Of a stretch of 64,000 nt of DNA, positions 1 to 30,269 are shown piece after piece. Below the pieces are notes generated by a model that saw only the letters and a list, made by a program, of their open reading frames with translations, was not told where the DNA came from and ran no database searches. The position numbers were made by a program, and so were the translations under genes. Origin of the DNA: Macrostomum lignano (Eukaryota); contig NIVC01004003.1 of the NCBI GenBank assembly GCA_002269645.1, positions 1,379-65,378 on the forward strand, in the 5' to 3' direction. Each line of letters opens with the position of its first letter. Position 1 is the stretch's first letter.

Positions 1-757
1 AACAGGTGGTTGTTGAAGTCTTCGGACCGCAGGTCGGCCGCCATGATGACGTCACGGAATATGTTAGTGAAAATGCCGCCAGTTGAACCACTTCGCTCCG
101 ACCCCAGACCCTCGGAAGTGCTGTAGATGTACAGGCAGTCTTCCAGACATTGCACCCGAGTTCGCGGCGCCACAGGCCCACCCACTACTCGGCAAGCTTG
201 GACAATAAAAATCTTCGGCTTGCCACGGAGGCCGGGACACTCGCGCACCTGACTGAACAAAGACTCCAGTTCGATTCTGTGGCCGTCTGTACTGAATATG
301 CAGCCGTTATGGCCGTGGCTCATGACGCACAATACAAAAACATCATGCTGCTGGTATTGTGTCACAGGCCTGTTTATAGCGGGCAGGTAGTGCGTAAAGA
401 AGTGACTTGTCAGGTTGCAGTGAATTTCTACTTCCAGTCCCAACCTCTCGAACGCCTGTGTCAGCCCCGTCTCGTGGCTATCGTTCATTGCTCCATGCCT
501 TCGAGTTAGACTCGCAGTGTTGAAGTTAACATTGTTTATTATAATTGCAATGCCTCTTGTGGGTCTGTCCATGGAGTATCGATTGGGAGGCAGCGGCATT
601 GGCGGTGCGTTGGCGGTAGCGATGGAGGAACGACGGAAGGAGCAGCCGCCGCAGTAGCTTCGCTCCACGGAGCCCCGTTCTCATCTCCAGCCTCAGCAGT
701 GCTCCTCTGGCACTTGTAGCCAATGTTCTAGCGTCGCTTTGGTAACTGTTTGGCATA
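1..757 (-). CDS. Caspase (peptidase C14) catalytic-domain exon, runs off the left edge
   Basis: Manual translation from 599 downward: MPLPPNRYSMDRPTRGIAIIINNVNF...RRHGAMND...VLCVMSHGHNG (His 315-317)...LRGKPKIFIVQACR (Cys 192-194)...DCLYIYSTSEGLGSERSGSTGGIF, with no stop down to base 1. Acceptor TTTTAG at 758-763. The Pro/Ala-rich linker at 600-757 needs about 2 frameshifts to join the domain. Confidence 0.93.
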
Positions 758-1256
758 CTAAAATAAATGTTTTTTTGCATTTATGCTCCAAAATTAATTA
801 GGATTAATTTTCAAATTCGTGAACAATTCTACTAGCTTATTGCTCTGAAATCTTTTATTACGAGCGTACACGTAAATGGGTTCGGGGGCTTACGTTTATT
901 GATGACAGTGGCTACTAAATTGTATCACATTGTCCACTACTAGCGTAGAGACGCTACTGTTCAAATAACTGGTCTTTGCCAGGGGCTTACATGCTTACGA
1001 AGCGGGTTGTACAAAGCGTGAAGTGAAAGAAGTTCCTAATAGTATGAGCGAGTTAGGTAATACTGACCCTATTTATGAAAATTTTCGAATGTCCTTATGA
1101 CAAAAATCACTTAAGTTCGATCTTCTTTCTGCGTAAATCGACTCGAATAATTACATGGCTCGACTTAATGGACTCTTGCAGCCTACGCTCGTAAAAAATT
1201 ACAGTCTAAAATATCCGTGACGCAGTTAAGTTTCCTGGAAGAATTGTTGCATTTAC

Positions 1257-1533
1257 CTCTGTTGGATGAGATCGCAGCAGTCCTGAAATTTATTGAACTT
1301 GGCCCATTCCAACGCTGTCATCTTGTACTCCCCTCGATGAGTCCACTCAAGCTCCGGAACTCGACTCAATTCCTTGATCACTTCCAGGTAATTTCCCCTA
1401 GCGGCCCAAATTAGAGGCGTGTTGTCGCAGAAGTCTTTGGTGTTTGCCTCGGCTCCGATATCGATCAGATGGCCACACAGTTTTGCGACCCCCGCTTGGC
1501 GGCGTGCGCTAGGGCGGTAAGCTTGCACCGGTC
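1257..1533 (-). CDS. Ankyrin-repeat exon (about 3 repeats), one frameshift near 1475
   Basis: Acceptor CTAATAG|GAC gives DRCKLTALAHAAKRGSQNCVAI(L)IDIGAEANTKDFCDNTPLIWAARGNYLEVIKEL...MTALEWAK; donor AG|GTAAAT at 1256 is phase 2 and matches the acceptor at 757. Confidence 0.85.
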
Positions 1534-1623
1534 CTATTAGTAATTTGAGGCGAGGACGCAATAGGCGAGATGGGCCTGGACGCAACTTAAATCATAGTTA
1601 TGTAAGCATCAATAAGTTCTTAC

Positions 1624-2936
1624 CACTTTCTTTACATCGGCTCCCATGCTATGCAGCAACTTCACCGTATCTGGATGGTTATTCGCGGCCGCGTGCATCA
1701 GAGGCGTCGAAAGAGAGTTGTCTGGCTTGTTGACTTCTTCGACCACGTTAAGATGCTTTATATGTGACTTGTTTGTAAAAATTTTAAGTAACTTATTGTT
1801 CCCTTGAGTGCTGGCCATGCAAATCGGCGTCTGTCCAAGTGAATTTTTAGCCCGAATTGAGGCGCCAGCTTTCAATAATTTAACAGCCAGTTCGGGGTCT
1901 GCATCGCTTTTTGCCAATAGCATGAGAGGAGTCTCGTTAGTGCCCGGCTCCACTTCTCATTCAGAACTTTGTCCGGCTCTTCCGCATCGAACAAGCGCTC
2001 GATTTCCTCAGCGGAAATAGATTGCTGTCGTTTAGGAGTACTCGTTTCTTGTTCCGACTCTAGATCGGACTCATCAATTCTGCTTGCCCTTTTTTCTCTT
2101 TCCGAACGAATTTGTTGCAGCGTTAAAGCAAAATTGGATTCTCCTTCTACTCTTTCAGGGTGAATTGAAGATGCTGCACGGATAAGCGGAGTAGTGATAA
2201 AGCATTGCTCTTGTTTTTTCTTCGGATTAATTGACGACACTGGACGATTAGTGAGAGAGTCTTTGTCTGCTTCTTCAGTGTGAGCTGAGGTCGGTGCACC
2301 AATATCACAAAATTCTCTGTCTGATCCTTCAGTGTCAGCAGAAGTCGGCGCACCAATGTCACGAGATTCTTCATCTAATTCTTCAGTGTGAACTGCACTG
2401 TGTGAAGGAAGCAGTTGTCGTTCATTTCCTGATTCTTTAATTGTCTTAAACCGAAAAATCTGTGTTTTCTTCCAAAATCGCTTTCGGGCGGTGTGAAGGA
2501 CCTTGAGGACGAATGCGCTTCTTTATTTTTTCCGTCTCATATTTTAAACTAGTAGCTTCAGAGGATTCAGACTTTCGCAGAATATCTTCCTCATGGACCC
2601 TTCAAGACGTCTTTTAGGAGGCTGCGTCTTCTGGAGTTGCACCATTGAGTACTCAAGGGCTTTGGCTGGAGCTGAGGCAGTAACGATGCTTGTTAAAGAG
2701 TGTCTTGCTTGACTTGCTCTAAAATATTGTGTTTTAGAAGCATGTTTGTTTAATATAATAAATGCCGGAAATTTTACTTTAGTAACGGTTTGACTATATG
2801 AATAACAACGTTTGCGCTGATCGTGAATCATTGGTTCTTCCAGTTGGGTTTCTTTCTCGAATGTTGTAATTCAAAAGCAACATTCAGAGTGTGAATTATT
2901 CAGACTTTGTTAAAAAGTGGTTTCTGTACTAGTTCT
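1624..2936 (-). CDS. Exon with long acidic/low-complexity linker followed by about 3 ankyrin repeats; frameshifted
   Basis: ETPLMLLAK...GASIRAKNSLGQTPICMA...DNSLSTPLMHAAANNHPDTVKLLHSMGADVKKV, donor GTG|GTAAGA at 1623; upstream linker readable in pieces (ORFs 2544-2831, 1872-2240). The 5' boundary (acceptor CTACAG at 2937) is tentative. Confidence 0.7.
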
Positions 2937-3003
2937 CTGTAGCAATTATAGTCTATAGTACTGTTTGATATTTGTTTTTATGCAGGTGACTGCCTGTGGC
3001 CAG

Positions 3004-3170
3004 GATTTTTTATGGGAATGTCTGTGACACGGATGGTCTATGGGAATGTCTGTGACACGGATGGTCTACGGGAATGTCTGTGACACGGATGGTCTATGGG
3101 ACTGTCTGTGACACGGATGGTCTACGGGAATGTCTGTGGCAAGGATGGTCTATGGGACTGTCTGTGACAA
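3004..3170. repeat. 28-bp minisatellite, about 6 copies (GGATGGTCTATGGGAATGTCTGTGACAC)
   Basis: Direct tandem copies visible. Confidence 0.9.
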
Positions 3171-3692
3171 CGTTTGGTTGCCGGTACAGTCACAGTATTT
3201 CTCAGCCTAATAAGTTTTAAATCGGTAAATGACCTTCATGGGTTTTCCGTGCCGTACGCTCGTACGATTCAAGAAAACAATAAAGTAGCTATAGAAAAAG
3301 TAAGCAACTACAGTAGCTAGCTAGTTTCGAGCCTTACCCAGCCACTTCGAAATACGATCTCCCTTCATATCTAAAATGGAGGAAAATAATGCACAAAGTT
3401 AAGAGTAAGAATAAAGTGCATCGATTATCGAAAACAAAAAATAATACTTAATATCTTCAAAAAGTCCTAAGATTTAATTAACAATTCAGATCATTTAAAG
3501 TGCTTTAAAGTCATAAATTGTACAGCCTAGTCCTAAGTTAACCTATTAAAAATGTTTGCTAATGGTACCCTCCAAAACGTATGTTTAGATGTTGGCCGAC
3601 TTCAAATGATCTAGTTTTACTTTAGTAAAACTGCTGCAATCAAGCAACGAAGCTTTAATGAATAATTTTTGATTCCCAAAAATAACTCTCAC

Positions 3693-4157
3693 TGCGAAAG
3701 AAGCTTGACAAGACTGTTCTTTCCGTGCTCAACAGCGAATTTCAGGGCCGTAGAGCTGCTATTGCTCTCAATCGTCCAGTCCGCACCTGCATCCAGAAGC
3801 AGATCAGCAATTGTTACTGACTCGCTGTCCGAGAGTTCTGAGCTGGTTGCCACGCGCATTAAAGCGGTAACGCCGTCTTCAGTTCGCTCGTTCACGTTTA
3901 CTCCTGCGTCAATGAGCGCTTTTATGACTTCTTCGTTGCAAGCAGCTGCTGCCAGCTACGTCGGCACAAGTTGGGTCAGCTTTGCTCATCAGAAGGCGCA
4001 GTAGGGATTCATTGCTCTGGTTATCCTGGACGCACTGCCACAGAATCGTCCTCCCGTGTATATCTGGTAAGTCGCAGTTGCCAATCGTCAATTTTTGTTG
4101 CAGTGCCGATACGTTGTTGGATTGGAAAAGCCGCATAAGCTGGTTTCGAACTTCTCC
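3693..4157 (-). CDS. Ankyrin-repeat exon (about 4 repeats), frameshift near 3945
   Basis: DIHGRTILWQCV...KADPTCADVAGSSCL / ACNEEVIKALIDAGVNVNERTEDGVTALMRVA...LLDAGADWTIESNSSSTALKFAVEHGKNSLVKLL; acceptor CCATAG at 4158, donor CA|GTGAGA at 3692. Confidence 0.8.
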
Positions 4158-4274
4158 CTATGGTTTCATATGAGTTATGTATTGCAAACATAGCATTAAT
4201 AAATGGTCCAAAATAGAGTCTTTTTAGCTAAACTATGAAAAAAACTGGGCAATGAATGCTTTTGGAAAGTGGCG

Positions 4275-4655
4275 TAGAAACTTTTGGTGGGTGCCAATGT
4301 CTCTTGGTGGGCACCCCTCTCTCTTTTGGTGGGTGCCACTGTCTCTTGGTGGGTACCACTGTCTCTTGGTGGGCGCCACTGTCTCCTGGTGGGCACCCCT
4401 CTCTATTTTGGTGGGTGTTACTGTCTCTTGGTGGGCGCCCCTCTCTCTTTTGGTGGGTGCCACTGTCTCTTGATGGGTACCACTGTCTCTTGGTGGGTGC
4501 GACTGTCTCTTGGTGGGCGCCCCTCTCGCTTTTGGTGGGTGCCACTGTCTCTTGATGGGTACCACTGTCTCTTGGTGGGTACCACTGTCTCTTGGTGGGT
4601 ACCACTGTCTCTTGGTGGGTGCGACTGTCTCTTGGTGGGTACCCTTCTCTCTTTT
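4275..4655. repeat. 20-22-bp minisatellite (ACCACTGTCTCTTGGTGGGT), intronic
   Basis: Tandem copies; explains the overlapping spurious ORFs at 4196-4757. Confidence 0.9.
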
Positions 4656-4944
4656 GGTGGGCGCCCACTATTCCTGTCTCTTAGGCCAGTTGCTGCAATG
4701 CTCAAAAGATGGCAAAAGTTAAGCTCCTGTCATTGGTCGAGGTCGGTTACTTTTTAAATTAGTTTTTGGAGAAGTATAACTTTTTGTAGAGTGATTGGAG
4801 GAGCCACTTGGGGGAGGGGCCTCCCCACCATGGACTTCGCTGTGCGTACGCCATTGCGTAGAGTTTGAAGACTCAAACTTGAATTTTAATTTATTCTTTT
4901 TATCTATGTTATCTATTTATTTACGTAACTTTTGTCTGTTTCAG

Positions 4945-5111
4945 GCTAAATGCACCAACCATTGCACAATGAAAAAATCCTATATAGTTAGAGCAGAAGT
5001 TAAGAGATTCACCAATTCATTGCTTATGCAAACGGTTTTAGTAAGCGGGCAGTTCCTCGCCCAAGACACAGTTGCTTGCCATTCACTGGAACGAAATCGT
5101 ATGAAGCAGTT
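4945..5111 (-). pseudogene. Degenerate third SH3-like segment
   Basis: A 64-nt GT-AG intron (5112-5175) joins the ankyrin exon in phase 2 to TASYDFVPVNGKQLCLGRG (ALYDF...EL...G-like); an NGWC motif lies downstream in the same frame but after stops. Confidence 0.5.
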
Positions 5112-5175
5112 CTAAGACTCGCTAAATCGCTTTAATATTTGCTAGACTATTGAAAAATAATTACTCGTAACTTAC

Positions 5176-5687
5176 ATTTCTATTAGATTTCCAATTTCCT
5201 CATTCCCGTTTTCCTTTGCAATATCGAACGCAGTTAAACCGTTTCGATCATTATTTGCAACAAAACCTTTCATTTTATAGTACCTTTGCTGCCGAAACAG
5301 GTGCAGCAGATGCTTCGCGCACTTCCAGTTGCCCAGCCTTGCGGCTTCCATTAGAGGCGTGCGTCCCTGGTCATTTTGCTGCCACTTCCAGTCAAATGGC
5401 ACAGCGGTTACGTGAGTCAGCGCGGTGAGAAATCGAAGGTTGTCACTTTGGGTTGCCAGATGTGCTGCTGTGTTCCCCTTTGCATCTATGGAATACGGGC
5501 AGCATCCTAGGTGTACTAGATAATGTATACACTTAGCGGTCCCTGGGCTGCTGTTTTTTGATTCGGCTGCTAGCATCAATACGTTGCGGCCTTGATCACC
5601 ATGCATCATCATCAGCTCCCTGCTAGCTAGTTGGCGAACTCTTTCGAAATCGCCTTGGATTACGTGTTCAGACAATACAGTCATGAC
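5176..5687 (-). CDS. Ankyrin-repeat exon (about 4 repeats)
   Basis: DQGRNVLMLAAES...DAKGNTAAHLAT...DQGRTPLMEAARLG...DRNGLTAFDIAKENG; acceptor TTGCAG|GTC at 5688, donor AT|GTAAGT at 5175. Confidence 0.9.
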
Positions 5688-6149
5688 CTGCAATTGAAAG
5701 TTGTTTCGAGTATTCTAAAAGCATTTCTTGATTTTATGAGTTTTTACAATGCATGCTTATTATTGCTAAAAACTTTTTGCCATGAAACAAAACTAGACTT
5801 TGGGTGCAATCACAACTTCAATTATTTGAGCTGCTCGTCTGGGCGCCCCAGCTAAATAGCTGTAATCTTCAACCATGCATTGAATTTAGTAGTAGGATAC
5901 TATATCTCAAAATATCGGGATAGATTGTTCAAATTCTAAGGCAGTCAAGTTTAATTTATTGGCATTTGAAAGCTCTAAGGGACTGCAACAATTAGGCGGG
6001 CAGTTGCCACAATGAGACCATTGCCTCACCAGCTGCAGTGTGACGATATGCCAACGAAGGCTTTGTATCAGGGTTGTCCTCCAAGACCCTGTAATACAAT
6101 GCTACTGTTGATGCTATAAGTAACAGTTGCCAAAATGTGTATGATTTAC

Positions 6150-6692
6150 CTTTTTTAATGGCCAAACGTAGTCGCTACAAAAGTAACTTGCCCGTTGACC
6201 ATCGACCTCGCCAATCCACCAGTGACAAGAATCTACATTGTCGGTATGCCTGTAAAGTATCCATACAATCTGTCCCACAGTAAGGGTAAGCTCGTCATCA
6301 TTTGTGGGAGAGTATGAGCCAATCACAACGGCCAAATCATCATCGCGCTCAAAGTAAAACATTTCAATTGGTTGTGTGTGTCTATTTCCATTGCAGTAGA
6401 ACGAGCAACCCGGATGTTGCAAGCTCAGATCAGTAATGAGCGCTTCAGCGCCAGCTCTCAACTGTTTGAAGTTACGGAGCAAGCGAGCTCGGATGCATCG
6501 CTCGAGACAGTTGCTCGAGAACAAGCCCGTCTCAAGCGTCGACTCATTGCGACCTTTGATGTATTCTGTGTCAAACTTAGGCAACTCTGTGGATACGACA
6601 AGGTCTCCTGGACGCAAACTTTGGACTTCGCCATCTTCAGAAGCTGGATGGCTGCGCTTTGCTACGTAAGTGTAGCACTTAGTGTTACTCAT
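6150..6692 (-). CDS. Tandem SH3-SH3 exon
   Basis: YVAKRSHPASEDGEVQSLRPGDLV...YIKGRNESTLETGLFSSNCLE and VIGSYSPTNDDELTLTVGQIVWIL...HWWIGEVDGQRASYFCSDYV; acceptor TTTTTAG just before ATG 6692; donor AAG|GTAAAT at 6149 is phase 0 and matches the acceptor at 5687 (unspliced, it stops at 6114). Confidence 0.88.
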
Positions 6693-8917
6693 GCTAAAAA
6701 AATTAAAAATAGTGGTTAAAGTCCTTTTTTTAGCAAAGCGCATTATCAAATCTAGATTCGGAAAAGACGGCACCCACAAGACTGTGGCGCGCAAAACTAA
6801 TTCCCTAACACAATGGCTAACAGATGGAAAAGGTGGAAAGTCAAAAAATAACCCCAAGAAAAATTTGGAAAATTACTACAATTGTCGAGACGAAGGGCAG
6901 TGAAGAGCCATTGGATAAGCATGGCAAAGGTTGATAGATGCAAAGTGATCTGCTCACAACGTCACGATCGCACGTAGATGTTTGATAAGAGAGTTGATAG
7001 AATTCTAATCAGAAATCCTATTATGAGTTTTTAAATGTCTAAATGCTTGAATTGGAGCAGTAGCATTGAAACTAAATTAAAGGGAATTAATTAACAAAAA
7101 GTGAATAGTTATGCAAGACACTAAATAACTAAATATATTATAATATCATTAATAAATCAGACCAAGTAGAAGCATTTATATTGCTTAAAGTTGCATACAA
7201 CTGCCAAAGTACTTTTATCATATGATATAAATGATAATTAGAAAAATGAAAAATGAACTGAAAATATTAAGCGTTGACTTTGGAACTAAAATATTTGTAA
7301 AAATATACATAAGTTTATTTAGCTAACATGTTCACTTTGAATAAATAGCTTAAAACGCAGACAAAGCAGAATATTATATTTTTAAAGGCTTATACCACTA
7401 GTGAAATAATTATCACATTTATTAGTAACAGTTTTTATTGCGGAAATACATATAAAAACAAGTTTTTAGTGCTGCTATATGCTAAATCACCATCCTACAT
7501 GCATATTACAACTGTGGATACTGTCCATAAAATCAGATACGTAAAGCTAGAATATTTGTTCGTAATGATATTTCACAAACATCGTACTGTAACCTACCAT
7601 TACACTAGCACAAATATAAATCTAATACAGACTGCACTTATAACTTTTTATAGCATATAAATTTTATAATCCTAATTATTCGTGATGTCCGACAGATCTT
7701 TGGAACTGAGGATTTGACTGGCAGATCCTTCCTTGATGTAATTTTATTTGAATCCGCGCTTAGCATACTGATACTATAGAAACGGAAAAAACTTCAGCGA
7801 ATTAAAAAACCTACGGTTTCGTGTTAACCAGTTATAACAAGAAAAATTACTGGTATTAAGATTAAAGTGAAGTTAACTTTGCTGTCTTTTATAAACAAAT
7901 TAAACGACAGTACAAACTTTTAGTCATACATATTAATTTCTTATATTTCTCTCAAAAATGTAAATTAAAGTACACATTTGTTCCGTGACGCAAAAAATAA
8001 GTGTCTATAAGATCTTTGCAAACAGATTCACAGTTGTAATTTTCACAGTCAATGCTTGAAAAAACTCATTCTAAGGCTTTGAATCTTACTTTAATAAGAT
8101 GAAAAGTGTACACTACGAGTTCAAATTCCTAAACGTAACACGCAAATGTACGGCTGTAACTCCATCTAGTCAAGTTTCGCCAAAAATTTTCTCTGCTAAT
8201 TTATTCTCGGCGGTGAAGCATTTTGCCGCTAATTCGGCGACGAGACCGTTATACCCCACAATTGCGTATTTGTATTTTTGTACACATCGAAAGCTCGAAA
8301 ATTAATACGTACAGGTATGTACTCGCTTATGAATTGATAGCTACATGTACGGGAGTAATTATAGCCGAACCATCTGCAGTAACTGAGACGGAGGCCGTGT
8401 TTGCTGTGTAGCCGAAACTCTTACTCTCGACGCGCTGGGCCCACATCTATATATTTATGAGCGCAGAGCTTGACTAGAATCTGTAGCCAATCAGACCGGC
8501 CGGGCGTACACGTTGCATGGGCTAGCATACCGTTCGTACGCACACTACATCTCTCCCCCTTCGAATAGAGACTGCGAGACAAAAAAATCGATTTAAACGT
8601 AACTCGAAAATACAAAACTCGAAACTGCGATCATGCGCATTGAAAACGGATTTTAAAATATTGAGTGTTGCGTGTTTGAATGTATTGGGAGTATTCGCGC
8701 TTGGGGAGACTGTGGGCGCAGCCACACACCCTTTACAAGTATATTTGAGTTTGTCCATAGACAATAATTTATGCATGAATAAGAAACTAAAGCGGCTGGC
8801 TGCCACATTGAGGAAATAAAATACTTGAATCGATTTCAGCAGCGAAAATGCTTAAAAAAACTTTAGTCCGCATATTTCAGGAAAGAGTCAGTTTATGTCA
8901 GTCACTGGATTCAAAAT

Positions 8918-10120
8918 TCAGTCCTTGTAGATTTTCAAGCCGCCCCGAGCATCGCGGGGTGCGGGCGCAGTGCCACCGGGGAGGCGGGTGGGTCTCGGTT
9001 GGCCTCGCCTGGAGCTCTCGGTGCAGCGGTTTGCGGCTGGGCGACGGCGTCGGCCAAGTCGGGGCTGACGACCTTGACCGCCGTTCAGTGCCGCCAGCAG
9101 GTTGAGCCATCGCGGCGTAGCAGCAGCGAGATGCCGCTGGACCGTCCAGGCACCGCTTTCGAACGGCGTCTGCGTCTTGCTGGCACCGACCCGCCGTCGT
9201 AGCACCGTGTCGTCGACCTGGACGCCGTGCCGCCGTGGTCGCCTTTTTACGTCCGCGTGCTGCTTCATGGCCTCTTTAGCGCCGGCGTCCGCGTCTCTCA
9301 GCCGCTGCTCATTGATGCGGACCCGCTGGGACGGCCGGGCGGTGGGAATGACGTCGTTTGGCCGCCGGCCCATCAGCAGCTCGGCTGGTGCGCGCCCGGT
9401 AGCCGTGTGCGGCGTGTTCCTGTAGGCCAGCAGCCACTCATCCAGAGCAGCTCTCCAGTCCCGCCGCTCCTCGTTGGCTGCGAGTACAAATTTGTTGATG
9501 GAGCGGTTCAGCCGCTCCGTCATGCCGTTGGCCGCTGGGTAGTAGGGCGTGATGAGGCGGTGCTTGATCCCGTAGCTCGCCAAGAACCGGCCGAGCTCCT
9601 TGGACGAGAAGGGCGGTCCATTGTCTGTCACGAGCTCCTGCGGGATCCCGAAGCGAGCGAACATCTCTCGTAGGCGGGGAATCAGTGCCTCAGTCGTCGT
9701 CGTCTGCATGAGCTGCACCTCCGGGAACCTCGAGTAGCGGTCCACGCACACCAGCAGCATGTTGTTGTTGATGGGTCCCACGAAGTCGGCGCCGATCGAC
9801 AGCCAGGCGCCCGCGGGGATCGGCGTCGGCTGCTAAGGCGTGGCCCTGACGGCTGGTGTGTGTGTCGTGACGGCGCAGCTGCGGCATCGACTGACGAACT
9901 CCTCCGCTTGAGTTGCCATCCTCGGCCACCAGACCTTGGTGGCGAGCCTCGCGATCGTCGTCTGCGAGCACTGGTGCCCTTGGTGCGCCAGTTCGAGCAT
10001 CTGCTGCCGCAGATCAGCTGGCACGACGATTCGCTGGTGCCGAAGGAGGACCCCGTCACCGCAGACAGCTCCTCTCGCAGCGCATGGAGCGAACGTATCT
10101 CGGCGTTGGAGCAATCCCAC
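8918..10120 (-). pseudogene. Gypsy integrase
   Basis: HHCC zinc finger (AHQGH...CRSC), then VCVDRYSRFPEV, VTDNGPPFSS and TPYYPAANGMTERLNR; split by a stop near 9836. Confidence 0.9.
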
Positions 10121-10249
10121 CGGTCGCCTTGAGTCGCCGCTATCGCCACCCGGATGACTGGGTCGCTGGCAGAGCTCTTGCGGTTGTCCTCGAGCGTCAG
10201 CGCCATCGGCACAGCCGCCTGCGTCACCTCGTTGATGTAGGTCTCCCTC

Positions 10250-11640
10250 CGCTTGTCGCCAAAACTTCCGCCATGCGCGCTTATGGGTTGCCTGCTGAGT
10301 ACGTCTGCAGCATTGGAGGCTCCCGGCTGGTACTCGACCTTAGGTGCTGGATCCTCAGCATCATTCGCTCGACTCGTGGAGGCGGCCGCGACCCAGGCGC
10401 GAACATGGCCGTCAGCGGCTTGTGATCGGAGACCACTGTGAACTTGGGCGATTCATGCAGGTAGTACTCGAACTTCAGGCAGCCGAACTTCACGGCCAGT
10501 GCCAGTATCGCCGCTCGACGTCGGATAGGGCTCGGCTGGCGTATACGACCGGCCTCGAGCTGCCGTCGCGCTGTACCTGCGCCAGGATGGCGCCCAGTCC
10601 GGTCGGCCCCGCGTCCACGATCAGCTGCGTGCACAGCCGCTTGTCGTAGAAAGCCAGCGTTGTCGGCTCCGCGATGCTGCGCTTCAGCTGCTCAAAGGTG
10701 CTGGCTTGGTCGGCGCCCTACTGCCAGTCGACGCCCTTCCTGGTCAGACGCCGCAGCGGTTCCACCACCTTGGCTAGCTGTGGCGTGAACACGGCGAGGT
10801 AGTTTACGAGGCCTAGGAATGAGCGAAGCTGTCAAATCGTCTCGGGCTCCTTGAAGTCTTGAACGGCGGCGACCTTGCTTTCGCTGGCCTGGACTCCTTC
10901 CGCCGTGAGCCGCAATCCCATGAACTCGATGCTGCTGCGCGCCAGTCGGCACCTCCGAGCGTTCAGCGTGATGCCGTGCTACGCCAGGCGGGCCAGACAT
11001 GCCTCGAGGCTGCTGTTGTGCTCCGCCATCGTGCAGTCGAACACGACCACGTCGTCGTGGATCCATTTGACGTTGGGCAGGCCTGCCAGCACTCGACTCA
11101 TCACATTCTGCAGGATCTCCTGGGAGGTGGACAGGCCCATGCACAGCCGGGTGAGACGGCGAAGTCCGCGAGGCGTCGAGAATGTTAGCAGCTTGCGGCA
11201 TTTCTCGGCCACAGGCACCTGGTAGAACGCCTTCGCGATGTCCAGCTCCGAGAACACGGTGCTGCCGGCCATGTCCCCGGTCACCTCCTCGAAAGTCGGA
11301 ATCTGGTGCCGCTCGCGGATGACGTAGCGGTTTACATCGCGGAGGTCCTGTGTGATGCGCACCTCGCCAAGCTCTTTCTTGGGCACGACGACCATCCGAG
11401 CAACCCACGGCGCTGGACCCGAATGATCCCGAGCTGCTCTAGAAGCTGCAGTTCCTTGTCCACCGCGCCTGCCAGGTGGATCGGCACCTTCGAAGGTGCG
11501 TGGCAGACCGGGCGGGCGCTGTCGGTGAGGTGGATGTCGACAGGCGGCCCGGTGAAGCAGCCGACGCCGCTGAACACGCTGGCATACTTGCGCAGCACCC
11601 CGCCGATGTCCTCTACGTGTTCTTGAGGTACTCCCCTGGA
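10250..11640 (-). pseudogene. Gypsy reverse transcriptase and RNase H
   Basis: VVVPKKELGEVRITQDLR, FSELDIAKAFYQ, KWIHDDVVVF, FTVVSDHKPL...RVERMMLRIQ; multiple stops and frameshifts. Confidence 0.88.
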
Positions 11641-11680
11641 TCTCGTGCCGCTGAGGAGGGTGTCGACCGCCGCCTCCGCT

Positions 11681-12871
11681 TCAGCGACCTGCAGCACCTG
11701 CTGGCCGGCAGTCGGAGGTGGTCCGACACGCAGGATGTCCATCTGGGTGGCTGTCTGCCTGCCGATGAGGATGATGTTCTACAACGTGGAACGTGGCGAC
11801 TGCCTGCCGGCCGAAAATGCGAGCGGCCATCGCCGCCTTGCCCAGCAGATGCATCGGCCGGTCTGACCCGTACGCGAACAGCCTGTCCGAGGTGGTCTGC
11901 AGGTGCGGCCGCTGTCTCTGACTCTCGAACGTGGCCCGGTTGATCACATTTCGAGCCGCGCCGCTGTCAATCAACACAGAGAGTCTGGAGCCGTTGATCT
12001 CGGCTACTCTGTGGGCCGACTGCTCTCCCTGGTCGACCTCGAACACGCCGGAGTCCGGGTCGTCCACCTTCTGGTAGCTGGTCTCGCCTTGCAGCGTTGC
12101 GACGGCGTTGGCGCCGCTCTGCGGGGCGTGCTGCCTGGACCTGCAGGGTTGTGCGAAGTGGTCCGGCTTCCCGCACTTTCTGCAGCTCTTGCCCTGCGCT
12201 GCGGTGCACATGGGGTGCCCCGATCTGCTGCAGCGATCGCAGGATACGCGCTGCGTCGGCGCCTGCGGTCTTGGCGGCTGCCAGTCTTTTCTGACTGCTG
12301 CGGTCTGCTGCGGTTCTCCTGATCTGTCGCTCTCCATCGCGGTGGCCTGCTGCTTCGCGATTTCTTTCGCCCTCGCCTTTTTGAGCACATCCGCCAGGGA
12401 GATGTTGTTGGTCTACAAGAAGTCTCTCCTAAGTCTCTCGGACTCGCAGTAGGCGACTATTTTGTCTCGGATCAGAGAGTCTCTGAGGGTCCCAAACTCA
12501 CACGGCTCCGCCGCCTTGCGCAGACGCTGATACCACTGGTCGATCGGCTCGCCAGGCTGCTGTCTGCAGGTCTCAAACTTGAAACGCAGGAACACAATGT
12601 TATTCTTTCCATCCCAGTACGTCTGGATGTTTTTCGCGAGGCTGTTGTGGTCCTCTCCAGAGACAATCTCGTTCTCTTCGACAACAGCCTGCAGCTCCTC
12701 TCCTGCGGCGTACAGCAGCAGCTGCTGCCCTCGAATCTTGTCGGTGATTCCAGCTGCAATGATGTACGTGGCGAAGCGACGAATCCATGCAGCCCAGCGC
12801 TGTGCAGTGGAGTGGCAATCGCTATTGATTGTAAACGGGTCGGGTGGCGTGAGTGTGATTTGCTGAGTCAT
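11681..12871 (-). pseudogene. Gypsy gag (with zinc knuckles) and aspartic protease
   Basis: PPDPF...RWAAWIRRF...LLLYAAG...RQQPGEPIDQWYQRLRKAAEPCEFG; CRKCGKPDHFAQPC; VLIDSGAARNVI; TAG stop at 12448-12450. Confidence 0.88.
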
Positions 12872-13455
12872 GATTTTAAGGGTTCGGTTCTTGCGACGCC
12901 ATTGTAGTATCTGAGACAGAGGCCGTGTTTGCTGTGTAGCCGAAACTCACGAAACTCTTACACTCTCGCCGCGCTGGGCCCACATCTATATATTTATGAG
13001 CGCAGAGCTATAATTGGGGTGGCGGTACCCACCCCGCTCTGTAGCCAATCAGACCTGCCGGACGTACACGTTGGGCTAGCATACCGTGCGTACGCACACT
13101 ACACCATCCAAGTGTTTTAGTAGAGTTTGATTAAATAAATCCTATATCCTAAAAATGAGTTGTCTGTGGGTACATGTAGGTAGGTAGGTATGCGATAGAT
13201 TTCAGAAAAAATGGCTCAACCGATTTTCTTCAAATTTGCACCATTAAATCAGAAATTTTCCTGGGACGGTACATGCATCTTGGCTAAGAATTGTAGCTAA
13301 AAAAGCTATTTCAAATTTTCTAAGAATGAAATTATTATCAATAAATACCGCGAAACTGCTGATATTTAATAGCTCGCATACAAAATTACATTTGATACAC
13401 GAGCTTACAAGTACAACATGTCTTGTAAGTTAGAGTAGACTTCATAAACATGACA

Positions 13456-13986
13456 CAGGGGCGTCATTAACGGGGGGACAGGGGGGACATGTCCCCCCAG
13501 TAAAATATCTTTTATGCGGCGCTAAAATGAGTGCCTGCGGCGCTAAAATGAGTGGCTGCGGCGCCAAAATGTGTGCCTGCGGCGCCAAAATGTGTGCCTG
13601 CAGCGCTAAAATGAGTGCCTGCAGCGCTAAAATGAGTGCCTGCAGCGCTAAAATGAGTGCCTGCAGCACTAAAATGTGTGCCTGCGGCGCTAAAATGAGT
13701 GCCTGCGGCGCCAAAATGAGTGCCTGCGGCGCCAAAATGAGTGCCTGCGGCGCCAAAATGTGTGCCTACAGCGCTAAAATGAGTGCCTGCAGCGCTAAAA
13801 TGAGTGCCTGCAGCGCCAAAATGAGTGCCTGCGGCGCTAGAATGAGTGCCCGCGGCGCCAAAATGAGTGCTGACAACACCGATTCTGAAAATAATGTACA
13901 TGTAGGAATTTAGTCATGTACATGTACATGTATAATTGTTGGCTTTGTCCCCCCCCCCCACCATAAAATCTATGGCGACGCCCCCG
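13456..13986. mobile_element. MITE with internal 21-bp tandem array
   Basis: TIR CAGGGGCGTC / GACGCCCCCG (9 of 10 match); flanks ACATGACA / ACGCGACA (6 of 8, possibly a decayed 8-bp TSD); GCGCTAAAATGAGTGCCTGCG repeats at about 13515-13865. Confidence 0.6.
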
Positions 13987-17345: not shown

Positions 17346-17719
17346 CTGTTTTGGAAGAGACTGAAGTGCCGAGAGCGAAGGACTGAGCTAGCTATTTTAT
17401 AATGAAAAACCCAGCCAGAAACAATGTTTGTTTTGCGACTAACAGCCATAATAGCATATGGTGATGCAAATCTATATTGCTATATGTGCCTGGGTAGGTT
17501 GCTACCGACTGCTCAATGTGTTATTAATTTCATGACCTCGCTTATAATATGCAGGCCACTGTCTATTGATTAAAGTTTGTCCTAAATCGATTGGTGTGTT
17601 ATCATAAAATTAAATTAAGCAAGATCGATGCAATTTTATTTAGATTTTTTACTGATTATATAGCGGGCTAGTGGTGGAGTCACGTGACAAACCAGATGAA
17701 CGGACACAAATATAGAGAC

Positions 17720-18131
<412 letters not shown>

Positions 18132-18870: not shown

Positions 18871-19849
18871 GACCTTGAGAGACGCGCTTGCTGCTGAAAC
18901 TCTGCTCTGCTGCAGCCCAACAACTGCAAGCTGCATATATAGCTGGCTGAGTCAAATTTTGATCGCCAGAGCCTGATTCTCTTCCCGCACGGCTCTCAGA
19001 GCCGGTTTTCCTCTCTCACAAAAGAGAGGCTGTGGGAGGCCTCGTGCGCACAAAAGCTCCGAAGCTGCACGAGAATGAAGCGTCAATGAGTTCACAGTCA
19101 TAAGGCTAACCGCATAAAGCATTCCCATAGGGATTGCACAGCTCTGCAGCTACAATGGGCACACGGGATGGGTTGCACAATATACTCAGCCCGTAACCAG
19201 GAAGTTACGGAGAAATCCGTGGCTCTGGGTCAACAGAACTGTGAGCACACGCAGCTGAGCACAGGAGAGGCTATGAAGGAAAAGTTGCAGCGATAGACCC
19301 TGCTATGGTGACAGCTTAACATCTTAATTTTAAGAGCTGAATAGCGATACTCTGCTGCGATCGTGTCGTGAAGACATGACTTCCGGCTTAGCCAGGAGAG
19401 AGCTTAGCAGGAACCAGAGAGCTGCTTTCTATGGTTTTAATTTACTTTTAAGGCGCTCTGTTTCATGGGAGCAGGGCTAAACTTAATTTGTGGTGTTAAT
19501 CGCAACTATTTATAAAAAAACTTGCAGCACTACTTGCAGTAGATAGTTGGTGGATTATATTAGCTTAACAGATAATAACTTGAGTACAAGCGCACTTTTC
19601 CTTTTATTTTCGCACGCTCAATATTGAAGTCGCTCGTTTGATTGACTCAAAACAGTTTTGTTTGCTCAATAGTCACAAACACCAGAGGCCCATGCAGCGC
19701 CACTCCCTTAGTTATGACTTGCAAATTGCACTTTTAAGTGTGTTATCAGTCATAAACAGCTGTTTTCCTTGGTTTCCGGCTACAGTCTACCGGTATGATC
19801 AGAAACTAAAATCTCACTCTGGAAATGAAGGTGCTTAGAGAATGGATAG

Positions 19850-20418
19850 CGAGTGGATAGAGAGTGGATAGAGAGTGGATAGAGAGTGGATAGAGAGTGG
19901 ATAGAGAGTGAATAGAGAGGGGATAGAGAGTGGATAGAGAGTGAATAGAGAGGGGATAGAGAGTGGATAGAGAGTGGATAGAGAGTGGATAGAGAGTGGA
20001 TAGAGAGTGAATAGAGAGTGGATAGAGAGTGGATAGAGAGTGAATAGAGAGTGGATAGAGAGTGGATACAGTGGATAGAGAGTGGATAGAGTGGATAGAG
20101 AGTGGATAGAGAGAGGATAGAGAGTGGATAGAGAGTGGATAGAGAGTGGATAGAGAGTGGATAGAGAGAGGATAGAGAGTGGATAGAGAGTGGATAGAGA
20201 TTAGATAGAGAGAGGATAGAGAGTGGATAGAGATTGGATAGAGAGTGGATAGAGAGTGGATAGAGGGTGGATAGAGAGTGGATAGAGAGAGGATAGAGAG
20301 AGGATAGAGAGTGGATAGAGAGTGGATAGAGAGTGGATAGAGAGTGGATAGAGATTAGATAGAGAGAGGATAGAGATTAGATAGAGAGTGGATAGAGATT
20401 AGATAGAGAGTGGATAGA
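19850..20418. repeat. 11-bp minisatellite (GAGTGGATAGA)n
   Basis: About 50 tandem copies. Confidence 0.97.
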
Positions 20419-22307: not shown

Positions 22308-23187
22308 TCCCAGGTTTTCGATACAAACTATTACCATTAAATCGACAATTTATTAATTAGCAACCGAATTTCTAAATTTTAAAACTGCAGAACCTGGGGT
22401 CCGTTCGGGTGCTGAACCCAAGTGTTATCAAAAGGTACGAACAGGTGTAATGACGCTCCATGTGCACAGTAAGCTAGTTCTAGCTTGATGACGCGATCAG
22501 AACTCGCGTAATTGCGTAATAGACGATGATGAAGCGAGACTATACTAATTATCACTCATCTGAAGCGCCTGCGGTCAAGATATGCCCTTAAAGTCTGCTA
22601 CATTCTCCCCCATAGGAATCTGTCAACGCATGATCAGTCTTTAAAAGAGAGACAGCAGATGTCCGTGGGGCAATCCGATCCGTAAGATGTTCTTCATCAG
22701 TTTTGTGTGCAAAGCTTATTTCTGCCTATTTTCAAAAATACTCTTAGCTTCTGCACCCAGTGCTCAAACCAAATACTATCGTCGACAGATGTTTTCTTTC
22801 TCAGTATTTAGCATAGCTACTATGAGAGGTATACTCTATCTAAATATTTAGTATATAAATTTTTATATGTAGGAAGGACCGCAACACGCAGTACGATCGT
22901 TAACATAAATTTGCGTGCAGGTTAATGAGATGCAAAATGATGAGTCATTGTCAGTTTGCAAGTATGACGCTAATAATGCATTTAGGATCAATTTACTGCG
23001 AGTATTCTTAATAAAGTAAGGATAACTTAAGTATGCCATGTTGAACTACCAAAGTGAGAGGGTGATTGATTTTCCCTGGCAATTTTTGTTGCGCCGGAAC
23101 GGAGCAACGCAAGCAGATGTCAAGAACACAGCCTAACTTTTTGTTGCGCATCCTCTCAAACAGGAATAAAGTCGCCAGGCTTACTGG

Positions 23188-23815
23188 GGTAATTGCTGAG
23201 ATGTTAAGTCTTGGGGGGGGGGGGAATTGCTGAGATGTTAAGTCTTGGGGGGAATTGCTGAGATGTTAAGTCTTGGGGGGGAATTGCTGAGATGTTAAGT
23301 CTTGGGGGGAATTGCTGAGATGTTAAGTCTTGGGGGGAATTGCTGAGATGTTAAGTCTTGGGGGTAATTGCTGAGATGTCAAGTCTTGAGGGGGAATTGC
23401 TGAGATGTCAAGTCTTGGGGGGAATTGCTGAGATGTCAAGTCTTGAGGGGGAATTGCTGAGATGTCAAGTCTTGAGGGGGAATTGCTGAGATGTTAAGTC
23501 TTGGGGGAATTGCTGGGATGTTAAGTCTTGGGGGGATTGCTGAGATGTTAAGTCTTGGGGGGGGGGGAATTGCTGAGATGTCAAGGCTTGGGGGGGAATT
23601 GCTGAGATGTCAAGGCTTGGGGAGGGAATTGCTGAGATGTCAAGGCTTGGGGGGAATTGCTGAGATGTCAAGGCTTGGGGGGGGAATCGCTGAGATGTCA
23701 AGGCTTGGGGGAATTGCTGAGATGTCAAGGCTTGGGGGGGGAATCGCTGAGATGTCAAGGCTTGGGGGAATCGCTGAGATGTCAAGGCTTAGGGAAAATT
23801 GCTGAGATGGCAAGG
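23188..23815. repeat. 27-33-bp minisatellite AATTGCTGAGATGTTAAGTCTT+G(5-10)
   Basis: About 21 copies; three sequence variants are arranged in blocks along the array. Confidence 0.95.
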
Positions 23816-24419
23816 CTTACAAACACAAGGTCAGAACCTATGTGTAGTTTATTTTTTTTTAATTATTACATTCTTTCTTTGCTCCCCAACGAGGGGCGTA
23901 GATCGCTTGTCATACTTCAAATTTTCGGGTTCTAAAAACCTTTTATTATGCAATTAAAAGTGCAATTTGGCGAGGTCAACCTGTCCAAAAGTAAAACAAA
24001 TCTTAGTCCAGACTTATGGGCGTCAGATATATGCATGGCTTCCATCTCGCCTTCTCCCTAATGGCTTGGAATTCCCTCTTTAAACAAAAACAATAATTTC
24101 GGCAGATATAGGTGAAGATAGGCAAGTGAATTCGTAGAAAAAGCATTACCTATGGCCTGGCCATCACGAGGTGTGCAATTTGGACACAGACAGGGTGGTG
24201 ATTAGCTCGGCTCGGCTAATCACCACTTACAACACCTCTTACAAAGCTTGCTTTCATTCACAAGCAATTTGCTTACACGCGAGAAAAGAATAGGACTGAA
24301 TAATGTGCAGCTGAGGGCACAACCATGAGACTTTTGTCTGTCTGTCTGTTTTTGGATTGTACAGAGGGTTCTATAAGGTAGCAGGACATGCTTGAAATGC
24401 ACATTGAAAGGGTAGTCAA

Positions 24420-25420
24420 CGGGTAGACTGGCTGAGTGAGATGCCAGACAGCGGGTAGACTGGCTGAGTGAGATGCCAGACAGCGGGTAGACTGGCTGAG
24501 TGAGATGCCAGACAGCCGGTAGACTGGCTGAGTGAGATGCCAGACAGCGGGTAGACTGGCTGAGTGAGATGCCAGACAGCGGGTGCACTGGCTGAGTGAG
24601 ATGCCAGACAGCCGGTAGACTGGCTGAGTGAGATGCCAGACAGCGGGTAGACTGGCTGAGTGAGATGCCAGACAGCGGGTGCACTGGCTGAGTGAGATGC
24701 CAGACAGCCGGTAGACTGGCTGAGTGAGATGCCAGACAGTGGGTAGACTGGCTGAGATGCCAGACAGCCGGTAGACTGGTTGAGTGAGATGCCAGACAGC
24801 CGGTAGACTGGCTGAGTGAGATGCCAGACAGTGGGTAGACTGGCTGAGATGCCAGACAGCCGGTAGACTGGTTGAGTGAGATGCCAGACAGCGGGTGCAC
24901 TGGCTGAGTGAGATGCCAGACAGCCGGTAGACTGGCTGAGTGAGATGCCAGACAGCGGGTAGACTGGCTGAGTGAGATGCCAGACAGCGGGTGCACTGGC
25001 TGAGTGAGATGCCAGACAGCCGGTAGACTGGCTGAGTGAGATGCCAGACAGCCGGTAGACTGGCTGAGTGAGATGCCAGACAGCGGGTGCACTGGCTGAG
25101 TGAGATGCCAGACAGCGGGTAGACTGGCTGAGTGAGATGCCAGACAGCGGGTAGACTGGCTGAGTGAGATGCCAGACAGCGGGTGCACTGGCTGAGTGAG
25201 ATGCCAGACAGCCGGTAGACTGGCTGAGTGAGATGCCAGACAGTGGGTAGACTGGCTGAGTGAGATGCCAGACAGCCGGTAGACTGGTTGAGTGAGATGC
25301 CAGACAGCCGGTAGACTGGCTAAGTGAGATGCCAGACAACAGGTGGACTGGCTGAGTGAGATGCCAGACAGCGGGTAGACTGGCTGAGTGAGATGCCAGA
25401 CAGCGGGTAGACTGGCTGAG
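24420..25420. repeat. 32-bp minisatellite (GGGTAGACTGGCTGAGTGAGATGCCAGACAGC)
   Basis: About 31 copies; source of the 414-aa repeat ORF. Confidence 0.97.
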
Positions 25421-29635: not shown

Positions 29636-30269
29636 GGAGAAGCTGTGAGAGGAAGGGAGCAGAAAAAGTGCAGGACAGAGAAGATGAAAGTAGTTCAGAA
29701 AAAGGAAAAAACAGAAATTTTGATAAAAAAAGAAGCCAAGCAATTTACGCAACTATTGCGTTAAGATTCTCCACACGGGCCTGAAAGTTTTACGAGTTTT
29801 TGTTCTGTCAAAAAGGAACGGCTCTCGCGCTCATTAATTTCTACAAAAGAATTTGACCGACATAAAAGTACAATCGAAGCAGCCCAAGACACAAACTGAG
29901 GCAATCCCAGCTAAGAAAGCAGCAATCCGAAATATCGAACCCAGCGCACGCTCCGTTAAAAAGTCAATTTGGGCGCAGCGAAGCAACTGGGCTGCAGCGG
30001 GCTCTGCTAGCGAAATTTGCACAGTTAATTACAAAACCAAAGGCCTTATAAGATGAAGACTGCGGACTGCCCGAGTGGCGCAAGATAGTGAAAGTAATTA
30101 CAGTGATAATCTTGGCAGCAAACTTATACAATATATGCATTATTGTTGATAGATTTCGCTTCCTAAGCCCAAGCCTCTCCACATACCGAAAACTCGCACA
30201 AGCTGACACAAAATCTAAAGTAAATCCCATTTTAGTTCAGGGTTCAACTAATCCCCTAAATGTGCAACT

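Follow-up and report, generated by a model that had tools for sequence, protein, structure and literature searches.

Ankyrin-prodomain (ANK) caspases, known first from Schistosoma, have been described for Platyhelminthes (Genome Biol Evol 2024, PMC11463336). They were reported as confined to parasitic flatworms, a free-living flatworm being said to lack them, and a kinase caspase was placed as their sister, near the DED initiator caspases (PMC11463336). The 64,000-nt stretch of DNA analysed here (the window) comes from the genome of Macrostomum lignano, assembly Mlig_3_7, and carries a gene with the feature of ANK caspases, namely ankyrin repeats N-terminal to a caspase in one polypeptide. As in the described proteins, an ankyrin prodomain replaces CARD or DED, the lineage is that of flatworms and the C-terminal caspase is related to the DED-caspase side of the tree. 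On the other hand, the host is free-living, the protein is much longer, with three ankyrin blocks and an acidic linker, and it bears SH3 domains, which have not been reported for the parasite proteins. As a whole, the data are best explained by an SH3-SH3-ankyrin initiator-type caspase gene whose copy in the window was broken mostly by consensus-error deletions, an explanation that we consider likely.

The M. lignano assembly is redundant and the animal is a neopolyploid. The window carries one of four copies of the gene, which are about 97-98% identical to each other, and this copy sits at the end of a 65-kb (65,378-bp) contig. The others are referred to as C1302 (about 97% identical to the window copy), C70 and C713. 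When the exons of the GenBank model P0001 were transferred to C1302, all seven introns joined phase-matched and the eight exons gave a single open frame of 1299 aa with no stops. Apart from two residues this product is identical to GenBank PAA69672.1, an RNA-seq-based model, and an intact copy of the gene is thus already deposited; the GenBank annotation of M. lignano was built from RNA-seq with StringTie, TACO and TBONE (PMC5730564).

In the window the gene lies on the minus strand, from position 6692 to 1 and for another 124 nt past the window start, so that the last 41 codons fall outside. It encodes, in order, an SH3-like domain, an SH3 domain, two ankyrin blocks, an acidic linker, a third ankyrin block, a proline-rich spacer and the caspase. 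Exon 1 (6150..6692; 543 nt, ending in phase 0) opens with the start codon ATG at 6692-6690 and contains the SH3-like domain (aa ~6-63), a conserved spacer of about 55 aa and unknown fold, and the SH3 domain (aa 121-178); per-exon alignment found it undamaged in the window copy. Exon 2 (5176..5687; 512 nt, ending in phase 2), with the junction letters cag/GTCATG and AAAT/gtaagt, does not differ at all from C1302 and holds ankyrin block 1, of some four to five repeats (Pfam Ank_2, 1e-18). Both GenBank models P0001 and P0294 include two mini-exons: exon 3 (5013..5085; 73 nt), encoding the 24 residues (I)EWQATVSWARNCPLTKTVCISNEL, and exon 5 (3338..3370; 33 nt), encoding (Q)YEGRSYFEVAG, whose boundaries map as tag/ATATGA..GCTGG/gtaagg. 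By tblastn, the ORF holding exon 3 has no counterpart in the two paralogs of the gene. Between them lies exon 4 (3693..4157; entry phase 0, end phase 2), with the roughly four repeats of ankyrin block 2; it measures 465 nt here versus 485 nt in intact copies, and the continuous 162-aa ORF of C1302 and C70 is replaced in the window copy by two overlapping frames.

Exon 6 (1624..2718; 1095 nt here versus 1099 nt intact) encodes the acidic Ser/Glu-rich linker of about 260 aa, which is not conserved in the paralogs, and the start of ankyrin block 3; it forms one 421-aa ORF in C1302 and C70 but is spread over three or four in the window. The block continues (DRCKLTALAHAAKRG..) in exon 7 (1257..1533; 277 nt here versus 278 nt intact; end phase 2; Pfam Ank_2). 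Exon 8 (1..757, plus 124 nt outside the window that end with the stop codon) encodes an Ala/Pro-rich spacer with the motif PLPPNR, followed by the caspase domain. Altogether there are about 13 ankyrin repeats in three blocks interrupted by the acidic linker, and the 1299-aa model matches Ank_2 at 4e-72. Intron 3 contains a minisatellite (4281..4665, no strand assigned; 20-bp unit, 124-bp higher-order unit; Tandem Repeats Finder) that has no stop in any of the three frames, which creates spurious ORFs at 4228-4757. Its length varies among the copies, with a 40-bp difference from C1302.

The first-pass annotation had proposed a single gene in the order SH3-SH3-ANK-ANK-linker-ANK-caspase, made of blocks on the same strand. 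The intact C1302 frame bears this out, and Pfam finds SH3, Ank and Peptidase_C14 matches on the minus strand. Of its five splice junctions, given as first and last intron bases, all are GT..AG, and three (6149/5688, 1623/1534 and 1256/758) agree with the RNA-seq-based GenBank models. The remaining two were misplaced: for 5175/5112 the acceptor is at 5086, which yields the 73-nt exon 5085..5013, and for 3692/2937 the path runs by 3692/3371 into the 33-nt exon 3370..3338 and by 3337/2719 into exon 2718..1624. The junction into 4157, which had been left open, is 5012/4158, in phase 0. A third SH3 domain suggested at 4980-5111 was rejected: only 24 residues of that segment are exonic (5085..5013), they give no SH3 signal, and the full model has no Pfam match there.

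The second SH3 domain is, judged by its sequence, a canonical CIN85/CD2AP-like SH3. It exceeds the Pfam cut-offs for SH3_2 (25.1 bits, cut-off 21.8) and SH3_1 (24.6 bits, cut-off 22.9) and also matches SH3_9; in a profile search of the PDB its top matches were all SH3 domains, the closest solved structures being those of the adaptors CIN85/SH3KBP1 and CD2AP (CIN85/SH3KBP1 SH3 at 5e-7). These adaptors differ from the present protein in having neither ankyrin repeats nor a caspase, and identity to them is just 33-43%. The first, divergent SH3-like domain has no Pfam match and only five PDB matches by profile search, all SH3 and all weak (E 0.12-2.2). It aligns to an SH3 profile by hhalign with a probability of 87% (E 3.7e-6) and matches a canonical SH3 exon of the same genome (E 1e-4). 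Moreover, both SH3 halves match, in the same order, one CIN85/CD2AP-like gene of M. lignano. An AlphaFold2 model of the N-terminal module had a pLDDT of 34, that is, no usable fold. By analogy with CIN85, the SH3 pair may bind Px(P/A)xxR ligands. The PLPPNR motif of exon 8, a candidate ligand of CIN85-type SH3 domains, is not kept in the paralogs.

At the other end of the protein, Peptidase_C14 matches the window at 5e-27 and the intact model at 2e-29, the latter along the entire profile (positions 1-233 of 233). PDB matches to caspase-3 and caspase-8 reach 1e-20, with the caspase-3 alignment spanning 225 residues, so that a complete p20 plus p10 caspase fold is predicted. The catalytic dyad is intact, as the first-pass annotation had noted: its His, encoded at 315-317 within SHG, and its Cys, at 192-194 within QACR, line up with the corresponding residues of caspase-3 and -8. 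The codons of the S1-pocket arginines are at 498-500 and 93-95, and the pocket residues Arg, Gln and Arg, in RHG, QACR and SER, align to RNG, QACRG and SWR of caspase-3. All three paralogs retain the dyad and the complete set of S1-pocket residues. The active-site pentapeptide is QACRV in this gene versus QACRG, and QACRV/E/L across the paralogs; the inter-subunit linker is unusually short and lacks a conserved Asp. As also proposed from the first reading, the prodomain is free of death-fold domains: neither the 1299-aa model nor any of P0002, P0003 and P0005 had a Pfam match to CARD, DED, Death or PYD (threshold E <= 0.1).

The window gene stands last in a tandem cluster of three genes for ankyrin-prodomain caspases; the other two share with it 45-55% amino acid identity and the exon order. 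In the tree the three SH3 paralogs form a group (100/96) nested in an M. lignano clade (100/99) with kinase-ANK caspases. The closest caspase domain outside the cluster is that of the kinase-prodomain caspase PAA89054.1 / P0122 (40% identity, E 9e-46), a member of the same 100/99 clade in which ankyrin repeats also precede the caspase; it differs in carrying an N-terminal kinase and a degenerate second caspase-like domain in place of the two SH3 domains. No parasite ANK caspase was among the best 150 HMMER matches, and word-based searches gave only M. lignano sequences. The tie to the parasite clade is thus an indirect one, suggested by the kinase caspase, which groups with our gene at 100/99 and is sister to that clade in PMC11463336. 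Proteins with the same Ank plus Peptidase_C14 pair occur in a tick (LOC144147094), the jellyfish Sanderia malayensis, the annelid A. virens and a bacterial metagenome, but they lack SH3 domains and the tree shows no relationship of their caspase domains to that of the window gene; they are probably independent fusions.

We infer from these features that the protein is an initiator-type caspase. A speculative mode of activation would have the ankyrin blocks and the two SH3 domains stand in for CARD or DED and dock the caspase on partners that are proline-rich or of another kind; caspase domains brought together on such a scaffold would dimerise and become active, linker cleavage being unnecessary. 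This induced-proximity model is borrowed by analogy from the DED initiators caspase-8 and -10, which likewise have a long recruitment prodomain; the domain described here scores equally against caspase-8 p18 and caspase-3. The DED initiators differ in possessing a DED and a much longer inter-subunit linker with a conserved Asp cleavage site. The deviating pentapeptide and the very short linker without this Asp could instead point to a protein that is not an apoptotic initiator but a protease tethered to a scaffold and acting outside cell death, in signalling or, as the first-pass annotation had suggested, in innate defence or remodelling, or else to a largely regulatory protein with narrowed or lost caspase activity. 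Caspase-like loci number at least 133 in M. lignano, and the varied N-terminal modules of its ANK caspases, including a kinase, a marginal Mab-21-like match and LRAT, suggest diversified, perhaps defence-type, inputs, in line with such a role. However, the dyad and the S1 pocket are fully kept in the three paralogs, and related caspases stand beside the DED initiators in the published phylogeny (PMC11463336); we regard this alternative as unlikely, though it fares best among those considered.

The first-pass annotation treated the window copy as a readable gene and overlooked that it is out of frame at nine places relative to the intact copy. The four-copy alignment and CDS translation show a 20-bp deletion in exon 4, on the minus strand between 3939 and 3940, where GCATGCGGCGGTGCGTAAAG is missing; part of one ankyrin repeat (..SSCLHAAVRKGNEEV..) is lost, and the shifted frame runs into a stop at residue 459, the first of 36 stops in the spliced CDS versus none in C1302. 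Per-exon alignment to C1302 revealed eight 1-bp deletions, near 2592, 2453, 2438 and 1946 in exon 6, 1470 in exon 7, and 704, 609 and -87 in exon 8. The four in exon 6 split it into four frames, and those near 704 and 609 shift the first 50 codons of exon 8 out of the caspase frame, so that junction 1256/758 leads here into a different frame. Over the whole aligned span, 22 substitutions and fourteen 1-bp deletions are private to the window copy, which has no private 1-bp insertion, and 13 of the 14 deletions lie within the 40% of the span nearest the contig end (binomial P = 6e-5). Since all are losses and they concentrate towards the end of the contig, the eight single-base deletions are probably errors of the long-read consensus.

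A true decaying duplicate, a pseudogene left by the recent genome duplication of M. lignano and carrying real mutations, is considered unlikely. The 20-bp deletion is atypical of consensus error, and this exon 4 site has lost 4 bp in C713; C70 and C713 bear further frameshifts of their own; codon differences between C1302 and C70 are 13 nonsynonymous to 4 synonymous, which indicates no clear constraint between them; and the redundancy of four copies would permit loss. Against this reading stand the one-sided, end-clustered indels described above and an exon 6 with four deletions and zero substitutions relative to C1302, the latter a pattern that neutral decay would hardly produce. Exons are also still 4-6 times less diverged than introns, although RNA-seq polishing could be part of the cause. 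Moreover, the assembly is known to be error-rich: it was built from PacBio reads with Canu and polished with Pilon, with just 64% error-free bases by REAPR and 180 Mb in blocks duplicated at 95% identity or more (PMC5730564).

The deletions also bear on the annotation of the contig. Its sole recorded CDS is a 240-aa caspase (P0293; 1..599, minus strand), which starts at window position 599, at an internal Met of ..PPMPLPPNRY.., and is the longest frame left open by the deletions; GenBank thus annotates only the caspase because this copy is broken. The RNA-seq-derived models P0001 and P0294 extend from the exon for the SH3 domains into that for the caspase, and P0121 connects ankyrin and caspase exons in a paralog. 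That the locus holds two genes, an SH3-ankyrin adaptor and a short caspase without prodomain, the long models being read-through or polycistronic pre-mRNA artefacts, is highly improbable: the contig record does list just the 240-aa caspase, and multi-gene precursors make up about 7% of the assembled M. lignano transcripts (PMC5730564), but the seven introns join phase-matched into one frame on C1302, the reading frame continues across the ankyrin-caspase junction in each of the three paralogs as well as in five models (P0294, P0001, P0121, P0002 and P0003), and the 240-aa CDS begins directly downstream of two 1-bp deletions.

The architecture had been put forward as possibly new, its wide occurrence in databases being named as the finding that would tell against this. 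By that standard the claim largely fails: ANK caspases are described in PMC11463336, and Ank plus Peptidase_C14 entries for M. lignano are present in GenBank and UniProt. In the searchable literature we found no description of a tandem SH3 module in an ankyrin caspase, nor of a radiation of ankyrin caspases in a free-living flatworm. Thus, the pairing of ankyrin repeats with a caspase is known, and within the architecture of this M. lignano protein it is the SH3 pair alone that had not been described.

In an ORF and domain search of the window, minus-strand stop-to-stop ORFs carrying SH3 (6114-6872), ankyrin-repeat (5172-5714, 3689-3955, 1609-1956 and 1253-1591) and Peptidase_C14 sequences (3-680, E 5e-27) form a chain with the appearance of spliced exons, and the caspase ORF extends off the window to a stop codon 41 codons further on in the contig. 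The first-pass annotation had joined this chain into one gene through five junctions, each of which is flanked by GT..AG, its numbers being the first and last intron bases. Three more copies of the 9-kb locus, about 97-98% identical over exons and introns, lie on contigs C1302, C70 and C713. The exon model was obtained by mapping the RNA-seq-based protein PAA91848.1 (P0001, 951 aa) exactly on C70 and carrying the result to the other copies. Transferred in this way, the minus-strand exons in the window are E1 (6692..6150), E2 (5687..5176), E3 (5085..5013), E4 (4157..3693), E5 (3370..3338), E6 (2718..1624), E7 (1533..1257) and E8 (757..1, continuing outside the window). In the C1302 copy the same eight exons give a single open frame of 1299 aa, which corresponds to GenBank PAA69672.1 (BOX15_Mlig016621g1, 1297 aa, from a 176,443-bp contig) except for the first two residues.

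Against this model, junctions 6149/5688, 1623/1534 and 1256/758 were placed correctly. Junction 5175/5112 should read 5175/5086, and 3692/2937 is mistaken, since between its donor and the large exon, which begins at 2718, lies a further exon of 33 nt; acceptors 5112 and 2937 were rejected, as they gave the wrong frame or met a stop. The entry into 4157, for which no junction had been proposed, is made from donor 5012, with phase 0, and the supposed third SH3 domain turned out to be a mini-exon of 24 residues. The linker is genuine coding sequence that runs on into the third ankyrin block. Reading the linker ORF as an intron, in view of paralogs without the linker, was rejected, since in both C1302 and C70 it shares one continuous ORF with ankyrin block 3, and the RNA-based models include it.

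Spliced like C1302, the window copy meets a stop at residue 459. Compared with C1302 on the minus strand, it lacks 20 bp in E4 (after 3940, within an ankyrin repeat) and single bases in E6 (near 2592, 2453, 2438 and 1946), E7 (near 1470) and E8 (near 704, 609 and -87). These deletions produce the overlapping frames 3909-4157 and 3689-3955, split E6 into three ORFs and cause junction 1256/758 to lead into a frame other than that of the caspase. As a consequence of the frameshifts, the only product on record for the window's contig, C4003, is a 240-aa caspase-only protein from an internal Met at window 599 (window 1-599), an annotation artefact that would mislead surveys of domain architecture. 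C4003 is 65,378 bp long, and the window spans its bases 1379-65378.

In a four-way alignment of the copies, 22 substitutions, fourteen 1-bp deletions and zero 1-bp insertions are private to C4003, and five substitutions and one 1-bp deletion are private to C1302. All but one of the 14 single-base deletions of C4003 fall within the 40% of the aligned span nearest to the contig end (binomial P about 6e-5), and E6 of the window copy has four deletions and zero substitutions relative to C1302. The Mlig_3_7 assembly comprises 764 Mb in 5269 contigs. It was built from PacBio reads with Canu and then Pilon-polished; REAPR scored only 64% of the bases as error-free, and its GenBank annotation derives from a genome-guided RNA-seq transcriptome (StringTie, TACO and TBONE) (Wudarski et al. 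2017, PMC5730564). Because of the clustering at the contig end, the lack of substitutions in E6 and the known error-rich state of the assembly, the single-base deletions are probably errors, bearing the signature of a thinly supported long-read consensus.

We consider it unlikely that the window copy is a true pseudogene, reflecting real decay of a redundant copy. The 20-bp deletion does differ in kind from the single-base ones, and at the same spot in exon 4 (window 3939-3940), where C1302 and C70 are intact, C713 has a deletion of 4 bp. There are also more frameshifts in C70 and C713, and C1302 and C70 differ in only a few codons, with 13 nonsynonymous to 4 synonymous differences. However, exon divergence is 4-6 times below intron divergence in every pair of copies, a ratio to which RNA-seq polishing may contribute, and decay would hardly account for the contig-end position of nearly all single-base deletions or for an E6 free of substitutions. 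The two different deletions at this spot of exon 4 may be real alleles, or may stem from a hotspot of mutation or a consensus problem common to both copies. The window copy is a defective and probably mis-assembled version of a gene of which the assembly has an intact copy elsewhere. As a practical warning, contig ends in Mlig_3_7 probably carry deletion errors that fragment gene models.

The remainder of the window is rich in repeats. Remnants of transposable elements are abundant (8918-12900, 45933-46937, 47569-49053 and 49975-51375) and include a retroviral-type integrase with a GC-rich body (about 64%), a P-element/THAP9-like transposase domain (TNP-like GBD), a Crypton-like tyrosine recombinase (QRICH1, DUF3504 and Phage_integrase) and a retroviral aspartyl protease. 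A dozen unrelated minisatellite arrays, with units of 4-68 bp and 0.3-1.1 kb each, occupy much of 13-37 kb (13515-13870, 17716-18128, 19836-20418, 23186-23818, 24420-25420, 28491-29637, 30263-30997, 31381-32299, 33220-33615, 35303-35797, 36315-37205, and further on 58960-59638) and generate extreme GC skews, of +0.71 at 28-30 kb and -0.53 at 36-38 kb. An intronless minus-strand ORF of 796 aa (54341-56731), unmatched in Pfam, is one of a very large family in the genome (677 first-look candidates, of which the 57 scored have 35-48% identity), mostly intact ORFs of 800-950 aa, and could encode a transposon protein or a member of an expanded lineage-specific gene family.

In the 1299-aa model, Pfam returned many ankyrin matches (Ank_2, 4e-72), a marginal SH3 at 121-167 and Peptidase_C14 at 1076-1289 with the full profile covered, and no death-fold domain was found. 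The second SH3 domain is well supported: a three-paralog profile searched against the PDB matched CIN85/SH3KBP1 SH3 structures (5e-7), and the top matches were all SH3. The first is a divergent candidate, its sole PDB matches being weak (E 0.12-2.2), all to SH3 domains and aligned across the full domain; in hhalign it matched an SH3 profile with 87% probability (E 3.7e-6). An AlphaFold2 model of exon 1 (181 aa, three-sequence alignment) reached a pLDDT of only 34. When the genome was searched, both SH3 halves matched, in order, the two canonical SH3 exons of a CIN85/CD2AP-like gene on contig C441, the nearest genomic relative of the caspase SH3 pair. This adaptor gene (loci L013/L014, C441:159.6-162.3 kb, also on C525 and C2064) encodes, besides the SH3 exons, proline-rich stretches and a coiled coil. 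It may have been the source of the SH3 module through exon shuffling. Downstream, about 11-13 recognisable ankyrin repeats are arranged in three blocks, and a Ser/Glu-rich linker of roughly 260 aa, wholly different among the paralogs, separates blocks 2 and 3. An intronic minisatellite at 4281-4665, with a 20-bp unit and a length polymorphic between copies, is open in three frames on both strands and gives rise to pseudo-ORFs of 100-160 aa rich in PTKRQW/GTHQET.

The caspase domain aligns with caspase-3 and caspase-8 at about 1e-20 and conserves the His, the Cys, the Gln and both S1 arginines, with the pentapeptide QACRV. About 17 residues make up the inter-subunit linker, in which no Asp is common to the paralogs. 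After QACRVV (window 176-178) the window copy has Gly where C1302 and C70 have Asp (RVVD|G); this is the sole Asp in the short linker, and the paralogs have none there. Directly upstream of the domain lies an Ala/Pro-rich spacer with the sequence PLPPNR. The ligand motif of CIN85-type SH3 domains is Px(P/A)xxR, which PLPPNR fits as a candidate site. As this motif is missing from the two tandem paralogs, a self-interaction between the SH3 domains and PLPPNR is left as speculation.

Three tandem paralogs, of which this gene is the last, share the domain order SH3-SH3-ANK-caspase at C1302:137-176 kb, C70:487-537 kb and C713:245-296 kb, with 45-57% amino acid identity and a spacing of about 15 kb; the middle one corresponds to UniProt A0A1I8G013 and A0A1I8G2I6 and to GenBank PAA77988.1. 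The assembly holds three copies of the complete cluster and four of its last gene (window 1-6692 included), at about 97-98% identity. This repetition fits a redundant neopolyploid assembly; in Mlig_3_7, 180 Mb of non-repetitive blocks are duplicated at 95% identity or more owing to extra chromosomes in the sequenced line (PMC5730564).

In a HMMER scan of 1.8 billion representative proteins, the nearest caspase domains were all from M. lignano: the closest belong to protein-kinase, ankyrin and caspase proteins (PAA89054.1, 40% identity) and the next to ankyrin-caspases whose Mab-21-like N-terminus is marginal. Matches outside flatworms were far weaker even at best. When long proteins with the caspase region in common were sought by a word-based search, a single M. 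lignano paralog was the only match; with the M. lignano protein P0005 as query, the matches were all from M. lignano but for one tick protein. In a maximum-likelihood tree built without the parasite ANK caspases, a clade on a long stem (100/99) unites the three SH3 paralogs (100/96) with the kinase and Mab-21-like groups, and a second M. lignano clade holds more ankyrin-caspases plus LRAT-caspases. Ankyrin-caspases with other N-terminal modules are encoded on other contigs (P0122/P0123, P0140, P0144, P0276, P0005 and P0282-P0290), and at least 133 caspase-like loci were counted in the genome, redundant copies included. The kinase caspase PAA89054.1 (P0122/P0123) bears ankyrin repeats too, as well as a degenerate second caspase-like domain in which FIIGCGS and VQTHR replace SHG and QACR. 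The Mab-21_C match in Pfam is marginal (22-25 bits), and a PDB sequence search gave no support to the Mab-21-like N-terminus of P0144.

The single-gene interpretation of the first-pass annotation holds, and its claim of a new architecture largely fails: ankyrin-prodomain caspases are already known from flatworms, and GenBank already lists this very protein, as a hypothetical one. The published survey confined these ANK caspases to parasitic flatworms and described them as missing from free-living ones, listed for M. lignano a single caspase of this kind of interest, with a kinase-like prodomain and in sister position to the ANK caspases, and found no other unexpected prodomains in platyhelminths (Genome Biol Evol 2024, PMC11463336). 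In the searchable literature we found no mention of Mlig016621, Mlig003046 or Mlig004809, no prodomain combining SH3 and ankyrin with a caspase, and no recognition of M. lignano as holder of many ankyrin-caspases, the kinase one included. The tandem SH3 pair, closest to those of CIN85/CD2AP, ahead of an ankyrin-caspase is thus undescribed there, as is an ankyrin-caspase radiation with varied N-terminal modules in a free-living, early-branching flatworm, in contrast to the parasite restriction of the 2024 survey. Both points are relevant to research on the evolution of cell death.

Caspases with long prodomains become active when they are recruited and made to dimerise. The related caspase clade adjoins the DED initiators, and FADD was lost in flatworms (PMC11463336). 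Since these observations coincide with a short linker without conserved Asp, which argues against activation via upstream cleavage, we infer that the protein is probably an initiator-type caspase. In place of the death fold, the SH3 pair and the ankyrin blocks would provide the surfaces for docking, and the protease would be switched on by clustering. A non-apoptotic role, scaffold-tethered or related to defence, is a live alternative to the initiator reading. As M. lignano is a transgenic model amenable to RNAi, these genes offer a practical test of caspase activation without a death-fold domain.

A broader and rather doubtful proposal is that in M. lignano, and perhaps in flatworms at large, signalling through death folds has given way to a modular family whose members have an ankyrin-caspase core in common. 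Swappable N-terminal input modules, such as the SH3 pair, the protein kinase with its pseudo-caspase and possibly a Mab-21/cGAS-like domain, may wire different signals straight into caspase activation. FADD has been lost in flatworms, and DED caspases in the parasites. If it is true, the gene in the window would be the SH3-input member of the family, and the ankyrin prodomain would be older than parasitism, contrary to the published view.
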